Part shown: piece after piece, positions 1 to 16,921 of the stretch
Layout: every line of letters starts with the position of its first letter
Numbering within the stretch: position 1 is the stretch's first letter
Assembly (NCBI GenBank): GCA_001179505.1
Contig: CDMY01000805.1
Span: 1-18,859, forward strand
Source: Vitrella brassicaformis CCMP3155
Taxonomy: Eukaryota; Protista; Chromerida
Length of the DNA stretch: 18,859 nucleotides
Reading direction: 5' to 3'
Position numbers and translations under genes: made by a program
Notes under the pieces: model-generated
What the model was told of the DNA's origin: nothing
Seen by the model: the letters and a program-made list of their open reading frames with translations, nothing else
The model's database searches: none

Positions 1-80
1 CACACTTCCAGTCATCTGAGCCGAGCGCCTTCATCAGGGCCACAGACAGGGGCGAAGGGCATCGTGAGCACTTCGCAACA

Positions 81-2311
81 GCCATCAAGGTACACGAAAA
101 TGAAATCGGCCTTATGGACACCGTGTCGCGCGCCATTGCCGCTTTGTGTCGATCAGAGTTGTTTTGCATTCGATCCGGCCGATCGCCCGACAGCGAAAGA
201 GGTATTCGACATACGATTGGGATAAGCGTCCGCCATGTCAGTTTGCCGCATCTGACTCACCCGCAGGTGCTCGCGAAGCTCGGCATTTCATCGAGTCAGT
301 CAACAGTAAAAAGGACAGCCCATTGCCGTGGCGAGTCTTTGAATGCATGCAGGTGCGGCGCCGGCCGTCCCCCCTGCCCCCGTGAGTCCCGCTGACGTGT
401 CGCCCATCAGCCCCACATCGGGTGTGCACACCAGCATGGCCAGCACCACAACGGGGCTGCCCAGCACGGTCTCTCCGGCACAGATCAAGCCTGTGGTCCC
501 GTCAAAGCAAACAGGTCGGTATATGAGGCAGTGGCAGAGAGATTCCACTTGATCTGCGTGTATTGTAGCGTCCCCTGGTCAGCCTAACGCACCAGCCAAG
601 TCACCTCCAAATGCACCACAGCCACAGCGACAAACCAAATCCGTGAGAGAGCCGTTGCCAGACAACGGATTCCTATCAATGGCAAACATTTCTCTTTCGC
701 TGTTGCATGTCAGGCGGACACCGTCCTGACGACGAAGAAGATCAAACGGGTAGTACCGAAAGAACACTGATCGTTCACGCCTCACACAGTCGCTTGTATG
801 TGATGTATACTGTGTGTTGAAGAGGAACATTTATTCTGCGGTGAGAGCTGGTGACGTCACGTCTGTTGCTCAGCTAATCAAGCTGCGCGGACCGAGCATC
901 CTCGACAACGAAGAAGTCACGTGCTTCTGCTGCATAGTGACGCACTTCCGACTTGCACGCGCAGCAGAGACACTCAACTTGTATTTTTTCTGCTGCAGGG
1001 TGGCACTCCCTTCACCGAGGCTGCAAAAAGGGGTCACGTGGGCATCATGTCGGTAATGTGTGAGAGCAATCCTGACGTACTGCAGCAATTGACCAAGGTA
1101 CCGACACAGACAAGGCAGCCTATTTGCTGCTGCTGAAGAACTGTATGTCGGATGTGATGGAATGCAACTTGGTGGTTTGAATGCCCTGCACTTGGCTGCC
1201 CTCCAGGACCGTGTTGCGGCTGTCAATCAGCTGCTGGAGTGGAACCCCAAATCGCTCGATGCACGCAACGAGGTAATAGAGTACACACACGCGCGTACGT
1301 GTGTGTGTGTGTGTGTGTGTGTGTTGATCGCAGCGGGGCTTCACGCCATTCATCAAGGCTGCCTACGATGGTAATGTCGATGTGATGACGGTTCTGCATG
1401 CCAAAGGAGGGGAAAAGCTTCTCACTCAGACGGACAATGTGAGACCTCGTGCGGGCGAAACAGAAACAAAGTGCCTCTCATCTGATTGATTGCCTTTCTC
1501 TGTTTGCATTTTGCATGACACACACAGGACGAAGACACGGCACTCCACTGGGCTGCATATTATGGCAGATCTGCAGCTGTGTCTCAGCTGTGAGCGACAC
1601 AGATGACTGACTTACGCGAGTGTCTCATCCACACTGTCTCTCTGTCTGTCTGTGTGTCATTCTCAAAGGCTTGAGTGGGGCGGCAGTGCTCTGCTCGATA
1701 TCAGAGACAAAATTGTGAGTGCACACAGACATTCACACCATCGATGGGCCGAGTCATGTGCTCATCTCATCTCATGACGACAGGACGACACGCCATTCTT
1801 CATGGCTGCCAAGGGGGGTAATGTCGATGTGCTGAAGGCCATGTATGCCAAAGGAGAAGAAAAGCTTCTCACCCAGAAGGACTATGTGAGACCTCACACG
1901 CGAAACAACACACAATGCCTCTCGGTTGTGTGATTGCCTTTCTTTTGTTTGCATGACACACACAGGGCGGATACACGGCACTCCACTGGGCTGCGAAGTA
2001 CTGTCAATCTGCGGCTGTGTCTCAGCTGTGAGCGACACAGACGAATGACTGACGCGAGTGTCTCACACTCTCTCTCTTTGACTGTGTGTTATTCTCAAAG
2101 GCTCGAGTGGGGCGGCGGTGCTCTGCTCAACATCAAAACCACCAGGGTGAGTGCACACAGACATTCACACCATCGACGATGAGCCGAGTCATGTGCTCAT
2201 CTCATCTCATGACTACAGTACGAGGGCGAGAGGACGCCGTGGGACATGCCGCCGGACCGGAAACCGAAGAAAAGAGACGAGATCAGAGAGATCATGAAGA
2301 AGTACAAGTGA
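81..2311 (+). CDS. Ankyrin-repeat gene copy carrying only the last kinase subdomain (XI), a Pro/Ser linker and about 7 ANK repeats plus cap; 5' end not homologous to the kinase gene; possibly a pseudogene or silent cassette
   Basis: Exons: ..89, 157-201 (SCFAFDPADRPTAKE), 267-294, 353-514, 569-642, 714-749, 823-915, 999-1097 (GGTPFTEAAKRGHV), 1168-1272 (acceptor is CAA, not CAG), 1334-1438, 1528-1589, 1669-1714, 1784-1885, 1966-2027, 2101-2146, 2219-2311 (stop TGA). ANK motifs TPF/TALH-x-AA-xx-G-H/N are present and splice phases are frame-consistent. Confidence 0.8.
1334..2218 (+). repeat. Tandem duplication of a 3-exon/3-intron unit (about 450 and 435 bp), each unit encoding two ANK repeats
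   Basis: 1334-1783 and 1784-2218 repeat the same exon order (TPF-type exon, TALH-type exon, LEWGG exon) with near-identical introns, e.g. GTGAGTGCACACAGACATTCACACCATCG at 1715 and 2147. The right arm has only one unit. Confidence 0.9.
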
Positions 2312-3029
2312 TAGTCACTCTGTGGTGATGGCTGTGGTCTTATTTCTTCGTGTGTGGAGTGCGTAAAGCCCTTGTGTCTCTCGTGCGTGTGTGTGCAAGT
2401 GCTCTCTGATAGTCTGTGTGCGACTGGATGGTCGACTTGCTGAGTGCTCTCTGATGTGCTCATCGGTCAATTGAGCTCCGACGGGGCGGACAGAGGCGCG
2501 GGATCCTTTGACACAAAAAAGGCCTCGCCTTCTTCGGCACGGATCTCACCCCCTGGCAGCGCCTACCTCTCTGCGTGTTGAGTGAGTGAGGGGGGCGTCT
2601 GGTGCACTCTCTCCTTTGGTCGGGTGTGGTGTACTGCTGGTGGTCGTCCGTCTGTCTGTCTGTCTCTATCGAGTGGATGTGTCGAATCAACAGCTGTGGG
2701 CACACAGTTAGTTAGAGGTGCGCATGTTGCTCAACGCATGGACGTCCAACAAAGACAGACAGACAGAGAAAAGCCACGGACGAAGGCACTCATCCATCCA
2801 GCCACCCATTCAGTCATTCACGCATTAAAACTCACAGGCAGACACACACAGACACACACAGAGAAGACAAGACGAACCGAAACAAAACACCCGTTTTGTA
2901 CGTCTGCCTTGCTCACGCACCAATCAATCAGTCGACTGTCCTTTTCTCGTCGGACTGGAGGAAGGGACCATCACTCACACCCACAGACAGCATCCACACA
3001 CCACACACGCTGGCTGCCGGTGTGTGTCA

Positions 3030-3212
3030 TTATCCGGCTGCGTGTGTGCCGCCGAAAGTCTGCTGCTGGGGGTGCAGTGGGGAGGCCTCGGGCGATGGGT
3101 GGGGGGACGGCAGGTGGGGAGCCGCCGGGTGCAGTGTCTGCTGTGCGGTGGGGGAGGGTGTGTGGCCAGCTGCTGTGGCTCCCTGGTGGTGCTGTTTGGC
3201 GCTTTGGACGGC
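3030..3212 (-). pseudogene. Duplicated fragment of the importin-5 last exon (C-terminal 61 codons plus stop)
   Basis: [12 protein letters not shown]...GGTHAAG* matches 12899-13084 at 58/61 aa, with 6 nt differences in 186 by hand count. No upstream importin sequence is present. Confidence 0.9.
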
Positions 3213-3389
3213 GATGAGGTCAGAAAAAGGCACCCGCCCCATTCCGCCCACACACGCACACAAACAGACAGCAGCGTCCCACCGCCGAGCAAAACGGGTC
3301 TGCTCGACGCTTCGCTTCATTAGCTGGCACACACCCATGTCTGTCTGTCTGTCTGCCTGTCTGCTGTGTCACGATCGCTTCAATTTAGC

Positions 3390-3689
3390 NNNNNNNNNNN
3401 NNNNNNNNNNNNNNNNNNNNNNNNNNNNNNNNNNNNNNNNNNNNNNNNNNNNNNNNNNNNNNNNNNNNNNNNNNNNNNNNNNNNNNNNNNNNNNNNNNNN
3501 NNNNNNNNNNNNNNNNNNNNNNNNNNNNNNNNNNNNNNNNNNNNNNNNNNNNNNNNNNNNNNNNNNNNNNNNNNNNNNNNNNNNNNNNNNNNNNNNNNNN
3601 NNNNNNNNNNNNNNNNNNNNNNNNNNNNNNNNNNNNNNNNNNNNNNNNNNNNNNNNNNNNNNNNNNNNNNNNNNNNNNNNNNNNNNNNN
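3390..3689. other. Assembly gap (300 N), followed by a 19-nt poly-C run (3690-3708)
   Basis: Directly visible. The homopolymer is a plausible cause of the contig break. Confidence 1.
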
Positions 3690-3814
3690 CCCCCCCCCCC
3701 CCCCCCCCACACACACATTTTTCTTTTCACAGACAAAGTAAGGCCGGCAGTGTTACTGGCACATGCAGAGATATGACGGCTGCTTATCTTGTCATTGTCG
3801 TGGCTCTTGTCGTG

Positions 3815-5919
3815 TCATCGTACCGCCTTGTGGAGTGTCCGCGGCCGTCTCGGCACCTTGTCAAAAGCCATGAGCTCCTCGACGGGCCGCGAGGCGTCCA
3901 CGACAAAGTCAGCCTCAGCAGCGAGAGCGGCATCAATCGTCTCCACCACCTGCACAGTACACACAATAAAGGCACACAGAGAGAGACAAGTGGATATAGA
4001 CACAGCCGAGACACACAGGAACAAGACACCCACTGACTTGGTGTGCCTCTCTGAGTGCGGTGTTGAGGGCGGCTTCCTGCTCGGGCAAATGATGCTGACA
4101 CACAACACACCACGGCACACCATGAGAGGAAAGCAGAGCAGAGCATGAGCGCATTGCCTCTCTCTCTCTCTCTCTGTGTCTGTCTGTCTGTCTGTCTGTG
4201 TGAGGATGTGGTTACCCGTGTAGCGTCAGCCACCTGCACGAGCAGAGTTTTGAGGAGGGCATTCTCCCGCTTCAGTTCAACACCCTCGGCCAACGCGTCC
4301 TTGTACCTTAACATGAGGACATGCACCCACGTGTCTGCGCCATCCACGTGCTGTGTGTGCATTGATCTCACTTGGTGTGATATTCCCGCAGGTAGGCTAT
4401 CTGCTGATCCTTCTCATAAAGCCTTTAGACACACAGAGAGGTATCACATAACAAACAAGCCACACACAGCAGACAGAGAGACTTACTTGGTCATGAAGTT
4501 TGTCACAGTCTGCCTTCCGGTGTCGATGCGCGAGGCGGCCTGCGCCACACTCTCCTCCAGCACCACCGTCCTCAACCGCAGCGCCGCCTCGCTGTCCTCC
4601 TTCTCCTTGGCCAACGCCGCCAAGTCATCCTGAGTGGCCGCCAGCTGATCCTCGATAGTCTTCTTGACGCTCTCAAGCTGAACTGAATGATGACATCAAC
4701 CACAGACAGAGGGATGGTGCGTGTGGCGTGGGGGTGGGGAGGGGAGTACCCATTTCCTGCAGGAGCCGTTGTCTCTCGTTGGTGAAGGTGCCGGCGCACT
4801 CCTCACCCTGTTCGTGCTTCCGCTGCGTGCACAGGCCCAGACGCCACACACACAGACACACACACAAACACACAGACACATACACACATAAGTGATGACT
4901 CACATCAATGCCTCCAGGTGTCCGCCTGCCCACGGTGAGTGTGTCTTTGAAGAGCTTGAGGTCGCTCTGGAGGTGCTCAACGTTTTCCCTCTCTGACTGT
5001 ATCTCCTCTATCAGCCGCTGCAGCGTCTCGGACGCCTTGTCGAACAAATCATTGTCCTTGAGCTTCTTCGCCGACTCATTGCGCACCTGCACGCAACACA
5101 GCGGGGGAGGAAAGAAACGCGGCTGCATCTTTCTGCTGGTTTGCTCCTCGTTTGTCTGTGTCTCTGTCTCTGAGCGCGTGTGTCTTGTGCCACATTCACA
5201 CCCATCCAATCACACCCATCCGAATATAAACGTCCTCATAGACTTACAGTGAAGAAGTCGTCTTTGAGGAAGTCGAGCACCACTCTGAGAGTGGTCATGA
5301 GCCGCAGCTTCGAGGGGGCCTTCTCCAACTCCTTGAGCTCGTTGGGCTGCCACTTGCGCAGCGAAAAGGCCTCGCCGCTTTTGCCCTCCTCGGCCAATAT
5401 GAAAGCCAACATCTCCAAAAACTACAAAAAAACACATGGACGGACACACATTATGCTGCCGGCTCTCTCTCTGTGTGTGTGTGTCTGTGCTGGCACTGCC
5501 TGGCAGTGAGTGTCGCTGCATGGGATGGCTGAGTGACTGACCTCTTCCAGGTTGTGTAGGCCGCTCTTGTCGTCGTCAAACCGGTCAAACAGCTCCTGCA
5601 CCTCGTCCTTCTTTCGAAAGAGGCCAATGGCCCGCATCAGCGTCCCCAACTCGTCCATGTCGAGCAGTCCATTGCCGTCCTGGTCAAACACCACAAACAG
5701 CGCCGCCACCTCCTCCAGCTTCTTGCTCCTGTCGACATCCAGCCCCGTGCGCAGGGCTGTCTGGATGGCCAGCTCTCGTGCCTTGGTGTAGGTCTCCGTC
5801 TCGGCGCGCTTCTTCTTCTTGCCGGTCTTCCTCCCGGGGCTCGACGGCTCTGCCAATGCCTCCGACGGCGGCTGTGCTGCTGAGTCGGGTGGGTGGTGGG
5901 GCTCAGCAGAAGATGCCAT
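3815..5919 (-). CDS. Calmodulin-like EF-hand pair plus long coiled-coil protein, about 429 aa, 9 exons
   Basis: Exons 5919-5542, 5421-5248, 5086-4934, 4822-4750, 4682-4487, 4422-4372, 4306-4234, 4094-4038, 3949-3815 (1290 nt, all GT-AG, phases consistent). EF loops are DQDGNGLLDMDE and DDDKSGLHNLEE in a CaM-like context (ELGTLMRAIG...EEFLEML), followed by E/K/L/A/Q-rich heptad-like sequence. The exact 3' end is uncertain because of possible donors at 3822 or earlier. Confidence 0.85.
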
Positions 5920-6127
5920 CAGGACGGATGGATGGATGATTTTCTCACAGCCTTTCGAGTGAACTGCAAACACTGTCGGCCTTTGTTGCGGAACTCTGCG
6001 GCGGGAGGAAAAGCGCGCTCCACCTGATGCGCGCTTGACGATTGCGAGCTTGTCAATCTTCGTGTGAATGAGATCTGCCCCTCTGTGTGGAAGCGTTGTA
6101 TGAGGGAGAGCTTGTGAGATCAATAAG
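5920..6127. promoter_or_regulatory. Putative bidirectional promoter (208 bp) between the EF-hand gene and importin-5
   Basis: Divergent ATGs at 5919(-) and 6128(+). Contains the inverted repeat AAGCGCGC-N10-GCGCGCTT at 6011-6036. Confidence 0.65.
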
Positions 6128-10009: not shown

Positions 10010-13000
10010 CGGAAATGTGAAATGTGTGATGGATGGATGTGCGTATCAGAGCGGATTGGACGCCGACGATCCGCAGAAGGAGTACATCCAGGAGGCCTTC
10101 CCGCGCATGTGCAGAGTCCTCAAGGAGGAATTCATACCCTACCTCTGTAAGGAAAGGAACCCATCACACACCACACAACACACAACACACAGACACTGGA
10201 TGGATGTGTACGTGCGTGCAGCTGTGCTGATGCCGCACTACCTGAGCACGCTGAGGACACAGGCGACGGAGGTGGACACCGACGCAACGCCCGAAGACGA
10301 AATCGACGACATGTCGCTGGCCATGGTGGACCAGAAGTGCATGGGGCTCAAGACCACTGTCGTCGAGGACATCCAGCAGTCAGCACACGAAGACACATGG
10401 CTGTGTACTTGTGTGGGTGTGGTGAATGCATGGATTATGGTGTGTGCAGGGCGGTGACGATCATCAAGACCTTCTTGGAAGTGCTCGGTAGGCGGCGCAG
10501 AAAACAATCACTCGTGAGTGTTCCAATCAGCGCTGCTGTCCCATTCCTTCTCTATCTCGTCGCAGGCACCGACTTCAGGGAATACATCCCCACAACCACA
10601 GAGGTACACACTGACACACACACACATGCTCACTTAGACACACACATACCTGGACTCCCTCCCTCTCCGCTGTGTGCATTAGGCTGTCGTGGCGCTGCTG
10701 TCGTTTCACTTTGCGGATGACGTCAAGACCAAAGCGGTGGGCGCCATGGCCGAGCTCATCAGAGTCACACGAGAACTCGTCGAGGTCAGCAAACACATCG
10801 ATGAAGCGGCTCACCGATGGATGGATGAAACTTTCTCTGTGTGGCACTCCACTCCTTGATTCAGCAACGTGAGGCGTCTCAGCAAGGTCAGCCTGCCGCT
10901 GAGAGGGAGCTGCTCGTCAACATGGTCGTGCAGGCCATCGACCGGATATTCAAATGCATGGAGGTCAGTCGGCACAGCACCTATACCCTCCACCTCTCAC
11001 ACACATACACACACACAGAGAGAGAGAGAGAGATGTGTGTGTGCCGGTGTGTAGGAGGAGGAGGACCTGGACAATCTTCGAGCGCAGGCCATGGGCATCA
11101 CCAGGTGCATCGCCGCCGCAAAGGGCGGCGTACTCAACGACGACCAAGTCAGCAACCAATCAAACCAACACACACCTACGCCCCCCACCACAATGTGTGT
11201 GTGCAGTTAAGCCGGATATGCGAGTGCACCATAACGCAGCTGACCGAGGCGACCCACAGGCGCATCGAGAGGGAAAAGGACAAGCCAACACCGCAGGAAC
11301 CGGTACGCCCTACACCCACCTCTCTCCCTCTACGTGTCGGTCGACTCGTGTGTGTGTGCGTTGGCGTGTAGGGTGACACAGAGGAGGTTGAGGATGACAT
11401 GGAACTCATCGAAGAGGAACAAGAAGCGGTCAGTAAACCCACACACAGGCAGACAGGGAGGGAGGGATGGACCACCACATTGTGGCTGTGTCTGTGTGTG
11501 TGTGTGTGTGCAGGAGCAGTCTCTCCGCAGCAGTTTGGCCGAGGTCCTCGCCGTCATCATGAAACACTACCCTGACGCATTCCTGCGCGTAACCACACAA
11601 AGACACCCACACACACACACACACAGAACAAAGCAACCTTTGCTCTTGGAATGATCTGATGTGTCCATTAGACGAGTGCGTCAAAGGTGATCCCCTATGT
11701 GGGTCACTTTCTGCAGCCCAACAGCAGCGTCGCCGACAGGGCTCTCGGGCTCTACTTCATCTGCGACTTCCTCGAGCACCTCCAGGCACGAGAACACACA
11801 GCCACGCCACACACGCAGAGAGAGAGAGAGACAGACAGACACGTGTGTGCACTCGTGTGTGGATGATTGTGTGACACAAACAGGATCGTCATTTCCACGA
11901 GTGGGGTCAGCAGTTCGTGGCCAAGATGCTCGACTGTGTCCTCGACGACCACACGGAGATCAAACAACCAGCCTGCTACGGGGTGCGCCACACACACACA
12001 CACCATTGCATCTGCCTCTGTGCGTGTGGGATGATAGACGGATGGATGGATGGGTGAGTGCAGGTGTCGCTTGCGTCGAGGCTGAGTGCCTTCGTGCCGG
12101 CCGTCCAGGTGCGTGAGTGCCTAACCATTCACCTCTCTCTCCATCCATCCATCCATGTGTGTGTGTCTGCACCCACTCAGGTGGCATTGGAGAGGCTGCA
12201 CCACGTCATAGTGCAGCAGGACAAGAACACCACACAGAAGAAGCGGAAAGAAATGCAGGCAAGAACCCAACACACACATCCATCCATCCACCCATGTGTG
12301 TGTGTGTGTGTGTGTGTGCAGCCAGCGATCGACAATGCCGTGTCGGCTTACGGCGAGATCCTCGTCAACTGCGGATCTCAGTCGCCTGCTTTATCGGGCG
12401 GGGCGTCGGTGTGCGGCATGACACTGCAGCAGCACTACGGTTTCTGGCTCGACCACCTGCCGCTCAGGGCCGATCCCGAGGAGGGACAGAAGGTGCACGA
12501 GAAGCTCCTGAAGCTGATGAACCAGGTGTGTGTGCTGCGTATGAGGGTGGGTGGACGGGTGGCCACACACGGACGCCATCGGCCTCTTTCTTCCTCTGTG
12601 TGTCTCCTCAGAACCACGAGGGCGTGTTGGGCCCCAACCGCTGTCACCTCCCCCGCCTCGTGGGCATCCTCTCGCGCGTCTACAAGACCGACTGTTCAAC
12701 CGACGAGTGCAACACAGCCATCCTCTCACTCCTGCAGCAAATCGGTCTGTCTGTGGGGGCGCATACACATCCCAACACACACACACGTCTCTCTCTCTGT
12801 GGTTGGATCTATCAGGCCACGAGCAGCTGCACCAGTGGCAGCAGAGCGGTGCCTTCAAGCCAAAGGAGGCCGAGCGCATCGAGAAGGTCTGGAAGGACAT
12901 AGCCGTCCAGAGCGCCAAACAGCAGCACCAGGCAGCCACAGCAGCTGGCCACACACCCTCCCCCACCGCACAGCAGACACTGCACCCGGCGGCTCCCCAC

Positions 13001-13084
13001 GTGCCGTCCCCCCACCCATCGCCCGAGGCCTCCCCGCTGCACCCCCAGCAGCAGACTTTCGGCGGCACACACGCAGCCGGATAA
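6128..13084 (+). CDS. IPO5: Importin-5 / karyopherin beta-3 (RanBP5, Pse1/Kap121 family), HEAT-repeat nuclear import receptor, about 1190 aa, 38 exons
   Basis: Exons: 6128-6196, 6366-6620, 6681-6836, 6926-7017, 7125-7199, 7296-7321, 7399-7441, 7509-7607, 7716-7742, 7845-7895, 7983-8094, 8177-8265, 8357-8381, 8446-8571, 8880-8984, 9058-9102, 9212-9248, 9357-9449, 9538-9652, 9735-9811, 9915-9976, 10050-10146, 10222-10378, 10450-10487, 10566-10603, 10683-10784, 10865-10963, 11055-11147, 11207-11302, 11372-11428, 11514-11588, 11672-11785, 11884-11982, 12064-12108, 12181-12258, 12322-12525, 12612-12744, 12816-13084 (3573 nt, one open frame). Family motifs include [84 protein letters not shown] and [18 protein letters not shown]. 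Confidence 0.9.
8572..8879 (+). repeat. 308-bp intron packed with (GACA)n, (GATG)n, AT-rich (TA/ACAT)n, (CT)n and (GT)n simple repeats
   Basis: Longest importin intron. The repeats are directly visible. Confidence 0.9.
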
Positions 13085-15571
13085 TGACACATACCGGCAG
13101 CCAGCGTCATGGTGTGTGAATGCGTGTGTGGTGTGAGTGCTGGTCCCTTCCTCCAGTCGTCATTGCATATAAGCCGACGAGTAAAGGAGAGTCCACTGAT
13201 TGGTGCGTGAGCAAGACGGACGTACAAAACGGGTGTTTTGTTTCGTCTCGTCTTGTCTTCTCTCTCTCTGTGTGTGTGTGTGTGTGTGAGTTTTAATGCG
13301 TGAATGACTGAATGGGTGGCTGGATGAATGAGTGCCTTCGTCCGTGGCGTCTGTCTGTCTGTCTTTGTTGGACGTCCATGCGTTGAGCGCCATGCGCAAC
13401 TCTAACTAACTGTGTGCCCACAGCTGTTGTTGATTCGACACATCCACTCGATAGAGACAGACAGACAGACGGACGACCACCAGCAGTACACCACACCCGA
13501 CCAAAGGAAAGAGTGCACTAGCCGCCCCCCTCACTCACTCAACACGCAAAGAGGCAGGCGCTGCCAGGGGGTGAGATCTGTGCCGAAGAAGGCGAGGCCT
13601 TTTTTGTGTCAAAGGATCCCTGCGCCTCTGTCCGCCCCGTCGGAGCTCAATTGACCGGTGAGCACATCAGAGAGCACTCAGCAAGTGGACCATCCAGTCG
13701 CACACAGACTTATCAAAGAGTACTCCCCGCCACACACACGAGAGACACAAGGGCCTTACACACTCCACACACGAAGAAATAAGACCACAGCCATCACCAC
13801 ACAGTGACTATCGCTTGTACTTCTCCATGATCTTTCTGATCTCCGGCCTGTTCTTCGCCTCGCCCCACGGGGTGTCGCCCTGTCGTCATGAGATGAGATG
13901 AGCACATGACTCGACCCATCGATGGTGTGAATGTCTGTGTGCACTCACATAGTTGTTTTTGATGTCGAGCAGAGCACCGCCGCCCCACTCGAGCCTTTGG
14001 GAGTGACACACGGAGACAGAGAGAGAGTGGGGGAGACATTCGCGTCAGTCATCCGTCTGTGTCGCTCACAGCTGAGACGCAACTGCAGATTCGCCCACCA
14101 CTGCAGCATAATGGAGTGGCGTCCAGCGATGCTGTGTGTGTCATGCAAACAAAAGAAAGGCAATCAATCAGATGAGAGGCATTCTCTTTCTGTTTCGCCC
14201 GCATGAGGTCTCACATTGTCCTTCTGAGTGAGAAGGTCTTCCCCTCCTTTGGCATACAGAGCCTTCAGCACATCGACATGACCACCCGCGGCAGCCTTGA
14301 TGAATGGCGTCATGCCAAACTGCAATCAACACAGACACACACACACACAGTCCACACACAATCGTCACACTGAGGTGTCAGAGACATGTGTGTGCTCTCT
14401 TACCACTTTGTTGCGTGCATCGATCAGTTTGAGATCCCACGCCAGCAGCTGATTGACCGCCGCAACATGACCCTTGGAGGCAGCGTAGTGCAGGGCGTTA
14501 AAACCAATCTGTATTTCATCACAGCCAACACATCTCTTCACCAGCAGCACAGATCATGGTTTGTATGTCTCGGTACCCCGCTTGTTTGCTGCAGTACGTC
14601 AAGTTTGCTCTCATACATGACTTTCATGACGCCAACGTGACCCTTCTCAGCAGCTTCAAGGAAGGGTGTGTCCCACTGCAGTATGAAAATACAAGTCGAG
14701 TGTCTCTGCTGCGCGTGCAAGTCGGAAGTGCGTCACTATGCAGCAGAAGCACGTGACTTCTTCCTCGTCGAGGATGCTCGGTCCGTGCAGCTTGATTAGC
14801 TCAGCAACAGACGTGACGTCACCAGCTCTCACCGCAGAGTAAATGTTTCTCTTCAACACACAGCATACATCACATACAAGCGACTGTGTGAGGCCTGAAC
14901 GATCAGCTGTGCCCTTTCGGTATTACCCGTCTGATCTTCGTCGGGAGGGCTTCATTATCGATTCTCAGGACGGTGTCCGCCCGACATGCAACAGCGAAAG
15001 AGAAATGTTTGCCATTGGTAGGACTCCGTTGTCTGGCAACGGTTCTCTTACGGCTTTGGTTTGTGGCTGTGGTGCCTTCGGAGGTGACTCGGCTGATGCG
15101 TCAGGCCGACCAGGAGACGCTACAATACACGCAAATCAAGTGGAGTGTCTCTCTCTGCCGCTGCCTCATATACCGACCTCTTTCCTCTGACGGGACCACA
15201 GGCTTGATCTGTGCCGGAGAGACCGTGCTGGGCAGCCCCGTTGTAGTGCTGGCCATGCTGGTGTGCACACCCGATGTGGGGCTGATGGGCGACACGCCAA
15301 CGGGACTCACGGCGGCAGGGGGGACGGCCGGCGCCGCATTTTGTACTGTTGACTGACTCGATGAAATGCCGAGCTTCGCAAGCACCTGCTGGCGAGTCAG
15401 ATGCGACAAACTGACATGGCGTACGCTTAACCCAGTCGTATGTCGAATACCTCCGTCGCTGTCGGGCGATCGGCCGGATTGAACGCAAAACAACTCTGAT
15501 TGACACAAAGCGGCAATGGCGCGAGACACAGCGTCCATAAGGCCGCTTTCATTTTCATGTGCCTTGATGGC
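12898..15571 (-). repeat. Right arm of the inverted duplication (partner 81-3214)
   Basis: The reverse complement aligns with 81-3214 by eye. It is about 460 bp shorter, mainly because it lacks one ANK tandem unit. Confidence 0.95.
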
Positions 15572-16921
15572 CTCCTTGGTGTGTTGGGGCAGGAAGATGG
15601 GAATGTCAGGAACCTGACAGAAAGGGAGACACGGGTGAATGGATAATGAGGCGGCAGAGGGGAGACGACTATTGGTTTTCGATGCCAGATCAGTTCAATA
15701 CCTCCTTGTCAACGACGATTTTCTTAACGATCACCGCCGTGCCTTTGCCCTTGAAGGGAGGCCGACCTGCACGCAAAGTTCGTCGTGGCGCTTTCTGTCT
15801 TTGGGCTATGTTACAGAGGATTTGCTGCTCACCTCCGTGAATTTCTCCCAGTACTGAAGACGGACATACACACAGATGCATCAGGGAGAGGCGATGAGGA
15901 AATAGTTGTGGGATGGCTTACTGCCGCCCAAAGCCCATATGTCCGCCTTGACGGTCAACTTGTCCACTGAAAGGCACAACCATAAGGCCCTCCAGTCACA
16001 TCGACTCGCTTTGCTTACAGTCTGTGTCGAAGCCCTCGGGGGGCATATAGTTTGCGGTCCCTCCAACAAAAGTGAGTGTTGTCTTTCTCTGAGCGCCCCG
16101 AATCATCCCAAAGTCCGATATCTTCAGAGTAAGGCCTTCACTCAACTGACAGACAAACAAGTAGGAGGAGAACAAGAGTTCTGGAACTCTGTGAAAGAGA
16201 GGCTCTCTGTCGTGACCGACAAGAATGTTCTCCGGTTTCAGATCTCTGTGGACGATGCCCTGGTCGTGCAAGTACTGCAGACCCTCACAGATCTGTGACC
16301 AACACACACACAGATGATGGAGACGCAAGAAGCCCTCTGCACTCCTTTTGACCTGTTTGGCGAATCTGTCTCGCACGTCGGACGGCAGTGGTCCGTTCTT
16401 GGCCAGATAAGCCGCCAGGGAGCCGCCCTTACACAACTCTGACGAGAATGACAAAAGGAGACACCAGAAGGGACAAGGCCGATGGGGGAGAGGAGTGCTA
16501 CCTAGTACCAAGGACAATCATGAGTCCGTATTTGTCGTCTCGGCAGACGCCTAGCAGCTGCACTATGTTGGGGTGTCGCAGCTGAGCCATGGGGAATGCC
16601 TCCTTGAGCACCTCCATGAACTGCGACTGCACACAGACACACCGATCCAACAACAGAGAGGGGGAGGTTTGCCGAGGCTCCTGCTTGCTGGGCACCGCTT
16701 GGTCGAGCTCTTCATGTGCTTTGTAGATTTTGACAGCCACGGGCCGCCCTCGCAGCTCCCCTCGACGGACAACCCCGAACCCACCACTTCCTAAGGAACG
16801 GGATGACAAACAAACACACCCATCCGTGCAGCCAATGAATTCGCTGGGTGGGCGAGTGGTGCTGACCGAGCTCCTTGTCGCTCACAGTCAGGTCTTTGGG
16901 GTCGATCACCAGATCAGCCAT
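13808..16921 (-). CDS. Ser/Thr protein kinase (TKL-like) with Pro/Ser-rich linker and C-terminal ankyrin repeats (about 5 plus cap), about 562 aa, 21 exons
   Basis: Exons: 16921-16867, 16790-16696, 16626-16509, 16438-16353, 16292-16221, 16145-16019, 15966-15922, 15853-15833, 15766-15702, 15613-15563 (GC donor), 15495-15451, 15385-15178, 15119-15052, 14980-14927 (acceptor CGG), 14850-14758, 14675-14577, 14508-14407, 14319-14215, 14131-14070, 13994-13949, 13879-13808 (1689 nt). All catalytic motifs are present: LGSGGFGVV, VAVK, LRHPNIVQLLGVC, HRDLKPEN, DFG, GTANYMPPE, ADIWALG, RPPF, CFAFNPADRPTA. ANK motifs: WDTPFLEAA, FNALHYAA, MTPFIKAA, WTPLHYAA. Confidence 0.9.

Follow-up and report, generated by a model that had tools for sequence, protein, structure and literature searches.

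The closest described phenomenon to the kinase-ankyrin (ANK) gene family reported here, which we describe from contig CDMY01000805.1 of the chromerid Vitrella brassicaformis CCMP3155 (assembly GCA_001179505.1), is found in the repeat domains of the fungal NLR proteins (NACHT/NB-ARC; nwd/het-e family). The ANK, TPR and WD repeats of these proteins are highly conserved internally, polymorphic in number and, by inference, evolve in concert (Dyrka et al. 2014, PMC4986451). At the Podospora anserina ANK locus Pa_3_8560, five positions per repeat are positively selected, and these are located in the beta-hairpin and the inner helix, on the concave face (PMC4986451). In Ectocarpus, the repeats of the ROCO-LRR and NB-ARC-TPR genes are encoded by exons in phase 0; paralogy is blurred by the shuffling of exons, and the concave face is under positive selection (Zambounis et al. 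2012, PMC3341825). The Ectocarpus genes are also clustered and accompanied by pseudogenes, and the LRR-kinases are without exon shuffling (PMC3341825). Libraries of designed ankyrin repeat proteins (DARPins) randomise positions 2, 3, 5, 13, 14 and 33 of the repeat, which were picked from co-crystal contacts (PMC1261162) and line the concave face, i.e. the beta-turns and the short helices after them (PMC10484509). The Vitrella sequence studied is an entire contig of 18,859 nucleotides (the window), in which two members of the family, named gene A (plus strand) and gene B (minus strand), are present; relatives were searched in the genome of 72,700,666 bp and 1064 scaffolds (PMC4501334). The region of interest is the part of gene A ranging from 1334 to 2311. 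Our favoured reading, which we consider probable, is that of a kinase-ANK family with a homogenised cassette, the contact residues of which are under positive diversifying selection.

Region 1334-2311 is the 3' half of gene A and consists of two tandem cassettes, each of three exons and three introns, followed by a terminal exon. The cassette comprises 71 codons (70 in copy 2), corresponds to two ANK repeats and is in phase 0 at both ends, so that gain or loss of a cassette leaves the frame unbroken. Gene A carries two cassettes and gene B one (14319-13949, behind an intact kinase). The ankyrin nature of the repeats (clan CL0465) is evident from the motif x-G-x-TP[FL]-x-x-AA-x-x-GH, present in the 38 genomic copies described below. 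Single ANK exons match the Pfam families Ank and Ank_2-5 at E values of 3e-4 to 0.06, slightly below the gathering scores since no exon encodes more than a single repeat. Search of exon a against PDB using phmmer gives E = 1e-19 to ankyrin-R/B and 1e-17 to DARPins, and the loops between the repeats are 2-3 residues longer than those of DARPins. The homologous peptides quoted in an earlier reading of the sequence alone (hereafter the sequence-only reading) are indeed translations of GT..AG exons, namely those of cassette 1, cassette 2 and gene B (14319-14215, 14131-14070 and 13994-13949).

A search of the genome with the cassette DNA, introns included, yields at least 49 matches, with 67-85% identity. 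Full-length cassettes number 38 (37 distinct) and are distributed over 16 contigs; all 38 are open, with GT donors and internal AG acceptors intact in every copy. In 5 of the 38, bases other than AG occupy the place of the first acceptor in the alignment, which in the case of cassette 2 at least is an alignment offset (AG confirmed). For at least 12 of the 38, a paralogue of the gene B kinase (detected by DNA) precedes the cassette on the same strand at a distance of 1-3.5 kb, and some genes carry further partial cassette matches beside one or two full ones. The largest cluster, with 10 full-length cassettes, is located on contig C374. Two cassettes of this contig (C374:9513-9950 and C374:10619-11056), placed 1.1 kb apart, are identical in exons and introns, and would represent either a very recent tandem duplication or an assembly duplicate. 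A full-text search of the published literature found no description of this family, and the word 'ankyrin' is absent from the Vitrella genome paper; the family thus appears not to have been described before.

Alignment of the 38 copies reveals that amino-acid entropy exceeds 3 bits solely at cassette codons 1, 3, 8, 11, 12, 36, 38, 43, 46, 47 and 71, which correspond to ANK positions 3, 5, 10, 13 and 14 of both repeats. All remaining aligned codons are below 2.7 bits, most scaffold codons being below 1 bit, and the scaffold elements VDV[ML], LLTQ and SAAVSQLLEWGGGALLDIK that had been called conserved from the window are borne out across the family. Thus with more copies aligned the variable sites do not scatter over the repeat, but fall on the same five positions in both repeats. 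In the phmmer alignment of exon a to DARPin chains, codons 1, 3, 11 and 12 correspond to positions 3, 5, 13 and 14, and codon 8 to Leu10. The sequence-only reading had placed the changes at the target-contact positions of DARPins. This is correct for positions 3, 5, 13 and 14, which are variable in both repeats with entropy above 3 bits and posterior 1.0 in the site models given below. It applies less well to position 2, which is moderately variable (~1.8-2.0 bits), and to position 33, which is weakly so (~1.3 bits). On the other hand, the framework Leu of DARPins at position 10 corresponds to a hypervariable residue in the cassettes, and this position has to be added to the list, as has position 16 with weaker support. 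Positions 10, 13 and 14 (i, i+3, i+4) would lie on one helical face.

ANK exons located upstream of the cassettes provide an independent replicate of this pattern. In the upstream exon of the b+c type (13 copies), positions 3, 5, 13 and 14 are above 2.5 bits and position 10 is at 2.4 bits, while in the upstream exon of the a type (20 copies), positions 5, 10, 13 and the last codon are above 2.5 bits and position 14 reaches only 1.6. The five positions therefore recur in four repeat types, position 14 being low in the a type.

Comparison of cassette 1 with its counterpart in gene B had led to the claim that binding-surface codons diverge more than the neighbouring introns, and this claim stands. 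Exons differ at 47 of 213 nucleotides (22.1%) and introns at 21 of 226 (9.3%; Fisher p = 3e-4). The difference in exons is concentrated in the 11 hypervariable codons, where 24 of 33 nucleotides (73%) differ as compared to 23 of 180 (12.8%) in the other 60 codons (p = 6e-12). The individual figures quoted earlier were also reproduced: intron 1715-1783 differs from its partner at 13948-13880 at 1 of 69 nucleotides, and the six codons ahead of it differ at 6 of 18 nucleotides with the last four residues all different. However, divergence is unequal among the three introns of this pair (6/82, 14/75 and 1/69, i.e. 7%, 19% and 1.4%; p = 0.0013), which implies that the clean 1/69 intron is partly a local effect of mosaicism or conversion and not a uniform neutral baseline. 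Intron 1715-1783 is the most favourable of the three, yet the contrast stands with the introns pooled.

For a test at the level of the family, 13 cassette codons at DARPin positions were fixed beforehand, thereby avoiding circularity, and 18 disjoint pairs of cassettes were formed by lowest intron distance. Over these pairs, the nonsynonymous divergence (dN) of the DARPin-position set is 0.85, which is 6.7 times the intron distance (0.127) and 4.1 times the synonymous divergence (dS) of the other codons (0.206). The proportion of nonsynonymous differences (pN) in the set exceeds that of synonymous differences (pS) in the other codons in all 18 pairs, with Fisher p of 1e-38 or lower. Codon site models were fitted with a self-written program (F3x4, fixed topology, a single fitted global branch scale, branch lengths not re-estimated). 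On the full-cassette tree, where omega under M0 is 1.13, the log likelihood is -4452.3 for M1a and -4219.7 for M2a (likelihood-ratio test statistic, LRT, 465), with omega2 of 7.8 at 15.7% of sites. On the introns-only tree, the corresponding values are -4743.9 and -4474.8 (LRT 538), with omega2 of 8.5 at 17% of sites. The same 11 sites have posterior 1.0 on both trees, and codon 49 (ANK position 16) joins them on the introns-only tree. The a-priori test and the site models on two trees (omega ~8) thus uphold the diversifying selection on an ANK recognition surface that had been proposed from the window.

It could be argued that constraint on the surface is merely relaxed, so that the surface drifts freely, introns and scaffold are held artificially similar by gene conversion, and the contrast between them overstates selection. 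In line with this, homogenisation has affected the introns and scaffold of the cassette more than the kinase half (see below), intron divergence is heterogeneous in the pair just described, and variable surface positions are common to all ANK proteins (PMC1261162). Homogenisation between paralogues is in part responsible for the low divergence of introns and scaffold. However, conversion tracts are unable to skip single codons, and the fourfold sites that flank the variable codons are as conserved as the introns; homogenisation of the scaffold would therefore hit the variable codons too unless counteracted by selection. Under neutral drift omega would not exceed 1, as against the estimates of 7.8-8.5 (LRT 465-538), dN is 4-7 times the neutral proxies in 18 of 18 pairs, and residue usage at the variable sites is non-random. 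No stop codon occurs at these sites where ~25 are expected, Trp makes up 7.9% against 3.3% expected, aromatics are enriched (p = 2e-5) and Pro is at 0.5%. As judged from this usage, the residues at variable sites look functional, and we regard relaxed constraint as improbable.

A second concern is that the variation originates from targeted mutation, either local hypermutation or templated diversification, with selection in a secondary role. Diversity is high at all three positions of the hypervariable codons (0.70/0.65/0.51) and pS inside them is high, both of which such a process would produce; repeated amino-acid turnover, however, itself predicts high third-position diversity. Diversity at fourfold third positions beside hypervariable codons is 0.19, as compared to 0.23 at other fourfold sites and 0.16-0.18 in introns. 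Since the fourfold sites adjoining the variable codons are not raised, a mutational hotspot is excluded, as is a conversion artefact, neither of which can operate at single-codon resolution. Variation is confined to single codons spaced by protein structure, with silent sites between them at normal diversity. In addition, neither a template repeat nor an element resembling a reverse transcriptase was noticed in the window, where no systematic search for one was made. Targeted mutation as the source is in our view scarcely credible.

The cassette was also compared with the kinase half to which it is attached. Features of a eukaryotic protein kinase were found for gene B only. Its joined frame contains GSGGFG, VAVK, HRDLKPEN and DFG, and in the per-exon Pfam search the HRD exon matches PF00069 with 40.1 bits (cut-off 31.7) and another exon PF07714 with 25.3 bits (cut-off 23.1). 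Assignment of a subfamily was attempted with exon-sized queries, one of which had no PDB match and the other of which matched ABL, CSK, EGFR and a RIPK with weak E-values. For the kinase of gene B, comparison with four paralogues gives dN/dS of 0.19-0.36, with all motifs retained; the kinase half is under purifying selection. The coupling of the repeats to a kinase, claimed from the window alone, holds for gene B, whose 260-aa catalytic domain is intact, and for those cassettes (at least 12 of 38) that were found downstream of a kinase paralogue.

In the gene pairs of this kinase comparison, the raw intron difference is 0.21-0.47 and pS is 0.30-0.52 in the kinase half, as against 0.14-0.17 and 0.11-0.22 in the ANK cassette (scaffold). 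Kinase introns are thus 1.4-3.4 times, and synonymous sites 1.5-4.5 times, more diverged than cassette introns and scaffold silent sites, which indicates either a younger age or a stronger homogenisation of the ANK cassette relative to the attached kinase. The nearest paralogue of gene A switches every 100-300 nucleotides in the ANK region, between gene B, C705:23220, C374:64690/65831 and C705:4355, while linker and 3' flank are B-like throughout. The second half of cassette 2 (about 2041-2220) is best matched not by cassette 1 but by C705:4355 on another contig, and the cassette tree is star-like with low support. These observations point to cassette segments that would have been duplicated and exchanged between paralogues, with selection keeping or creating the differences at contact codons. 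Homogenised silent sites, omega of ~8 and varying cassette number, the combination of concerted evolution and diversifying selection that is characteristic of the fungal NLR type, are all found in the family.

Such mosaicism raises the possibility that the differences seen in the window were mostly imported, gene A being a decaying or silent subtelomeric copy with pasted cassettes, perhaps a donor archive, and the contrast between A and B a matter of mosaic ancestry. The switching of nearest paralogue between B-like flanks and the foreign best match of cassette 2 favour this, as do the lost acceptor described below, the truncated 5' end and the subtelomeric position of gene A. On the other hand, none of the nine ANK exons that gene A has downstream of 823 is interrupted, and their splice sites are intact in all but one; furthermore, a mosaic origin leaves unexplained why the same five positions are variable in every donor. 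Importation of this kind is possible, though we would not expect it to account for most of the differences; it is moreover compatible with selection at the level of the family and not an alternative to it.

The status of gene A bears on this point. The acceptor of its exon at ~1168-1272 reads CAA with a 3-nucleotide insertion (1160-1170), where all five compared paralogues have CAG, and no in-frame alternative AG for this exon was found on reading the gene A sequence. Loss of the acceptor may reflect recent inactivation or forced exon skipping; gene A may skip this phase 0-0 exon, or it may only donate sequence to other copies. An apparent frameshift in the linker of gene A (40 extra nucleotides relative to gene B) was considered and rejected as a lesion: the segment is common to a paralogue on contig C591 and reads as a 59-nucleotide GT..AG intron (294-352). 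In gene B most of this 59-nucleotide intron is deleted, and a 21-nucleotide remnant (15357-15337) stays in frame and adds seven residues to the linker, which on comparison of the copies appears to be an intron exonisation by deletion. Two kinds of candidate splice joints were discarded. A joint from 312 to 354 in the read layout results from cross-matching of paralogue B and occurs in DNA runs too, and the many joints from 1654 to 2645 are an artefact of a (TGTC)n microsatellite. Microsatellites of the (TGTC)n/(CTGT)n type at 1634-1659 and 2645-2667, located in introns and in the 3' flank, draw unrelated contigs and false long-range joints.

Several points weigh against the reading of a functional, positively selected family. 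Gene A may be a pseudogene or otherwise defective, as suggested by the lost acceptor and by the kinase that is cut by the contig start. No splice joints at gene A or B were seen in the candidate RNA runs, which consisted of two assembled-contig runs guessed to be RNA and of uncertain type, and the exon limits rest on homology, open frames and GT..AG borders. Recombination is not accounted for in the site models, and LRTs are inflated by this. With 43 biallelic sites, too few for power, a PHI-like test for recombination gave p = 0.38 with four-gamete failures at 30% at all distances, and so exchange between paralogues is taken from the mosaic pattern and the contrast in rates. Inside the hypervariable codons pS is also high (0.54), with dN/dS of ~1. 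The cause is in our view saturation by multiple hits in both classes of change, which makes dN/dS within these codons alone unusable as a measure, and for this reason introns and the silent sites of other codons were taken as the neutral reference. Finally, the predicted placement of the variable residues on the concave face is derived from the DARPin alignment and the literature.

Under the favoured reading, region 1334-2311 would form the C-terminal ANK array in a member of a multigene family which, as counted in this genome, is so far specific to Vitrella brassicaformis. A typical member would consist of a TKL-like Ser/Thr kinase that is catalytically intact by sequence, a Ser/Pro-rich linker and 5-7 ANK repeats, part of the array being built from the phase 0-0 two-repeat cassette in a copy number that differs between genes. 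Recent duplication and exchange between paralogues would hold introns and scaffold codons similar across the family, while five residues per repeat would be driven apart, positions 3 and 5 at the tip of the beta-hairpin and 10, 13 and 14 on one face of helix 1. Each paralogue would thereby get a concave binding surface of its own. By inference, the variable surface would bind proteins, such binding would target or regulate the kinase, and conflict or a recognition task would drive the divergence.

The selected surface need not have any foreign ligand. Each ANK surface could dock a different endogenous substrate or scaffold as a result of subfunctionalisation after duplication. By sequence the protein is cytosolic and begins directly with the kinase, with neither a signal peptide nor a transmembrane segment seen in the exons read, and the kinase-ANK architectures ILK, DAPK and RIPK4 act mostly on endogenous partners, which speaks for such a housekeeping role. 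However, omega of ~8 at the same positions over ~40 young copies, together with repeat-number variation, clustering and subtelomeric location, is the pattern of conflict-driven receptors (PMC4986451, PMC3341825) and is unlike one-off subfunctionalisation. We consider housekeeping specialisation somewhat unlikely. We put forward only tentatively, as a rather unlikely proposal, that these are dozens of cytosolic kinases with DARPin-like ANK binders, renewed by cassette exchange between clustered and subtelomeric copies in which defective donors such as gene A take part, which sense foreign proteins of viral, bacterial or host origin and signal by phosphorylation. If true, this would be an NLR-independent, ANK-based innate recognition in the sister lineage of Apicomplexa, unlike described immune systems.

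Table 1. Features of the window, with the limits of each, the strand and the basis of assignment or further details.
Feature	Position	Strand	Basis or details
Arm A of subtelomeric inverted duplication (gene A: last kinase exons, linker, ANK array, 3' flank)	78..3216	+	inverted-repeat pairs I1-I21
Gene A exon, N-terminal capping ANK-like helix pair, 31 codons, phase 0-0	823..915	+	AG/GT, 96% identical to gene B 14850-14758
Gene A ANK exon, type 'a', 33 codons	999..1097	+	open, homology
Gene A ANK exon, type 'b+c fused', 35 codons	1168..1272	+	start set by homology, acceptor mutated
Cassette 1 exon a, 35 codons, first ANK repeat	1334..1438	+	hypervariable codons 1334-1336, 1340-1342, 1355-1357, 1364-1369
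Cassette 1 intron a, phase 0	1439..1527	+	GT..AG; mean per-column diversity 0.18 over 38 copies
Cassette 1 exon b, 62 nucleotides, start of second ANK repeat	1528..1589	+	hypervariable codons 1528-1530, 1534-1536, 1549-1551, 1558-1563
Cassette 1 intron b, phase 2, contains (TGTC)n microsatellite	1590..1668	+	
Cassette 1 exon c, 46 nucleotides, LEWGG...LLDI and hairpin of next repeat	1669..1714	+	hypervariable codon 1712-1714
Cassette 1 intron c, phase 0	1715..1783	+	diversity 0.16, lowest of the three introns in the family
Cassette 2, tandem copy: exons 1784-1885, 1966-2027, 2101-2146 and introns	1784..2218	+	direct repeats D7-D10, 84-94% identical
Gene A terminal exon: partial capping repeat and basic tail, stop TGA 2309-2311	2219..2311	+	
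Arm B of inverted duplication: gene B 3' part and flank	12898..15571	-	inverted-repeat pairs, full alignment
Gene B ANK array, exons 14850-14758, 14675-14577, 14508-14404, 14319-14215	13808..14850	-	AG/GT-bounded, open frame
Gene B ANK array, remaining exons 14131-14070, 13994-13949, 13879-13808 (stop TAG)	13808..14850	-	
Gene B kinase domain, 11 exons, 260 codons from ATG 16921	15451..16921	-	Pfam per exon, open joined frame
Telomere repeat (TTTAGGG)n at contig end	18752..18859	+	direct repeat family D6

The two genes are arranged in an inverted duplication (Table 1), the arms of which are 74-97% identical depending on the segment and each hold the 3' part of one gene. Gene B is complete and runs from the ATG through 11 kinase exons, a Ser/Pro-rich linker and seven ANK exons to the TAG (13808). 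Gene A is incomplete; the contig start cuts inside the last kinase exons, of which just two are within the contig, and its ANK array spans 823-2311. No CaaX motif is present at the C-terminus of gene A. Introns in the window are short, GT..AG and rich in CA/GT, with (TGTC)n microsatellites. Downstream of the exon with the end ...GCCATCAAG, the first two intron nucleotides are GC in gene B (15563-15562) and in the paralogue on C591 and GT in gene A (89-90); this looks like a GC-AG intron kept in some copies.

At positions 1-69 read depth is 5-10 times that of the adjoining sequence in all four runs, and homology to gene B ends there; a dispersed repeat at this place probably broke the assembly inside the gene A kinase. 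At the other end of the contig, the start codon of gene B lies ~1.8 kb from the telomere repeat. The (TTTAGGG)n repeat terminates at least 18 contigs, among them C374 with its large cassette cluster. Because both this contig and C374 end in telomere repeat, the kinase-ANK family may be enriched near chromosome ends. A scaffold gap of 300 N (3390-3689), followed by a poly-C run (3690-3708), is located in the spacer, arm A stopping ~170 nucleotides ahead of the gap. The spacer also contains an open reading frame on the minus strand (5425-6123) with an EF-hand pair (PF13499, 32 bits; PF13405, 33.6 bits); other long open reading frames in the spacer between the arms and between gene B and the telomere are without Pfam match.

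Comparison with the fungal NLR proteins shows similar repeats, varying repeat number, inferred exchange and five selected ANK positions in both. However, the Vitrella family has an N-terminal kinase as signalling module instead of a NOD, its repeats are organised as an intron-split two-repeat cassette with units dispersed among genes whereas the fungal repeats are mainly in tandem within one exon, and its host is a chromerid alga. Gene B has the order Met-kinase-linker-ANK, with no place for a NOD among the kinase and ANK exons read, and no NACHT or NB-ARC match was found in the exons and open reading frames scanned, which sets it apart from NLR/STAND proteins. The Ectocarpus candidate receptors share with the Vitrella family an algal lineage, phase-0 exon modules, exon shuffling that blurs paralogy, selection on the concave face, clustering and pseudogenes, but they combine LRR or TPR at one repeat per exon with GTPase or NB-ARC modules, in contrast to the ANK repeats of Vitrella, of which two occupy a three-exon cassette joined to a kinase.

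Repeat receptors with homogenised scaffold and selected contacts, built on LRR, WD, TPR or ANK, are present in plants, animals, fungi and brown algae, and to our knowledge they are nearly always joined to NOD or GTPase modules. The Vitrella family would extend the same evolutionary logic to an alveolate alga near the apicomplexan parasites, with the repeats placed on a kinase that is intact by sequence. A kinase with ANK repeats is in itself familiar from RIPK4 and ANKK1, cytosolic proteins in which an N-terminal TKL-like Ser/Thr kinase is followed by a linker and a C-terminal ANK array. The likeness is to the domain order of gene B alone, the kinase subfamily not being placed by the exon-level search, and the shared architecture probably arose by convergence. 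Animal RIPK4 and ANKK1 are, as far as we know, single-copy and conserved, without a hypervariable surface. Chromerids live with corals, and if the family senses foreign molecules it would offer a first handle on chromerid immunity or partner recognition, as well as a set of ~40 natural ANK binders, their variable positions defined, with which ligands could be sought. Irrespective of the ligand, the cassette with its conserved introns would be a clean natural case of exon-module exchange plus site-specific selection.

Like the DARPins (Binz et al. 2003/2004, via PMC1261162), the cassettes have a near-constant scaffold, the coinciding variable positions 3, 5, 13 and 14, and almost no Pro at the variable sites. 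They differ in being natural, in the lower variability of positions 2 and 33, in the hypervariable position 10 and in their longer loops. The selected positions thus match four of the six positions chosen for DARPin libraries, and position 10 has been added by nature.

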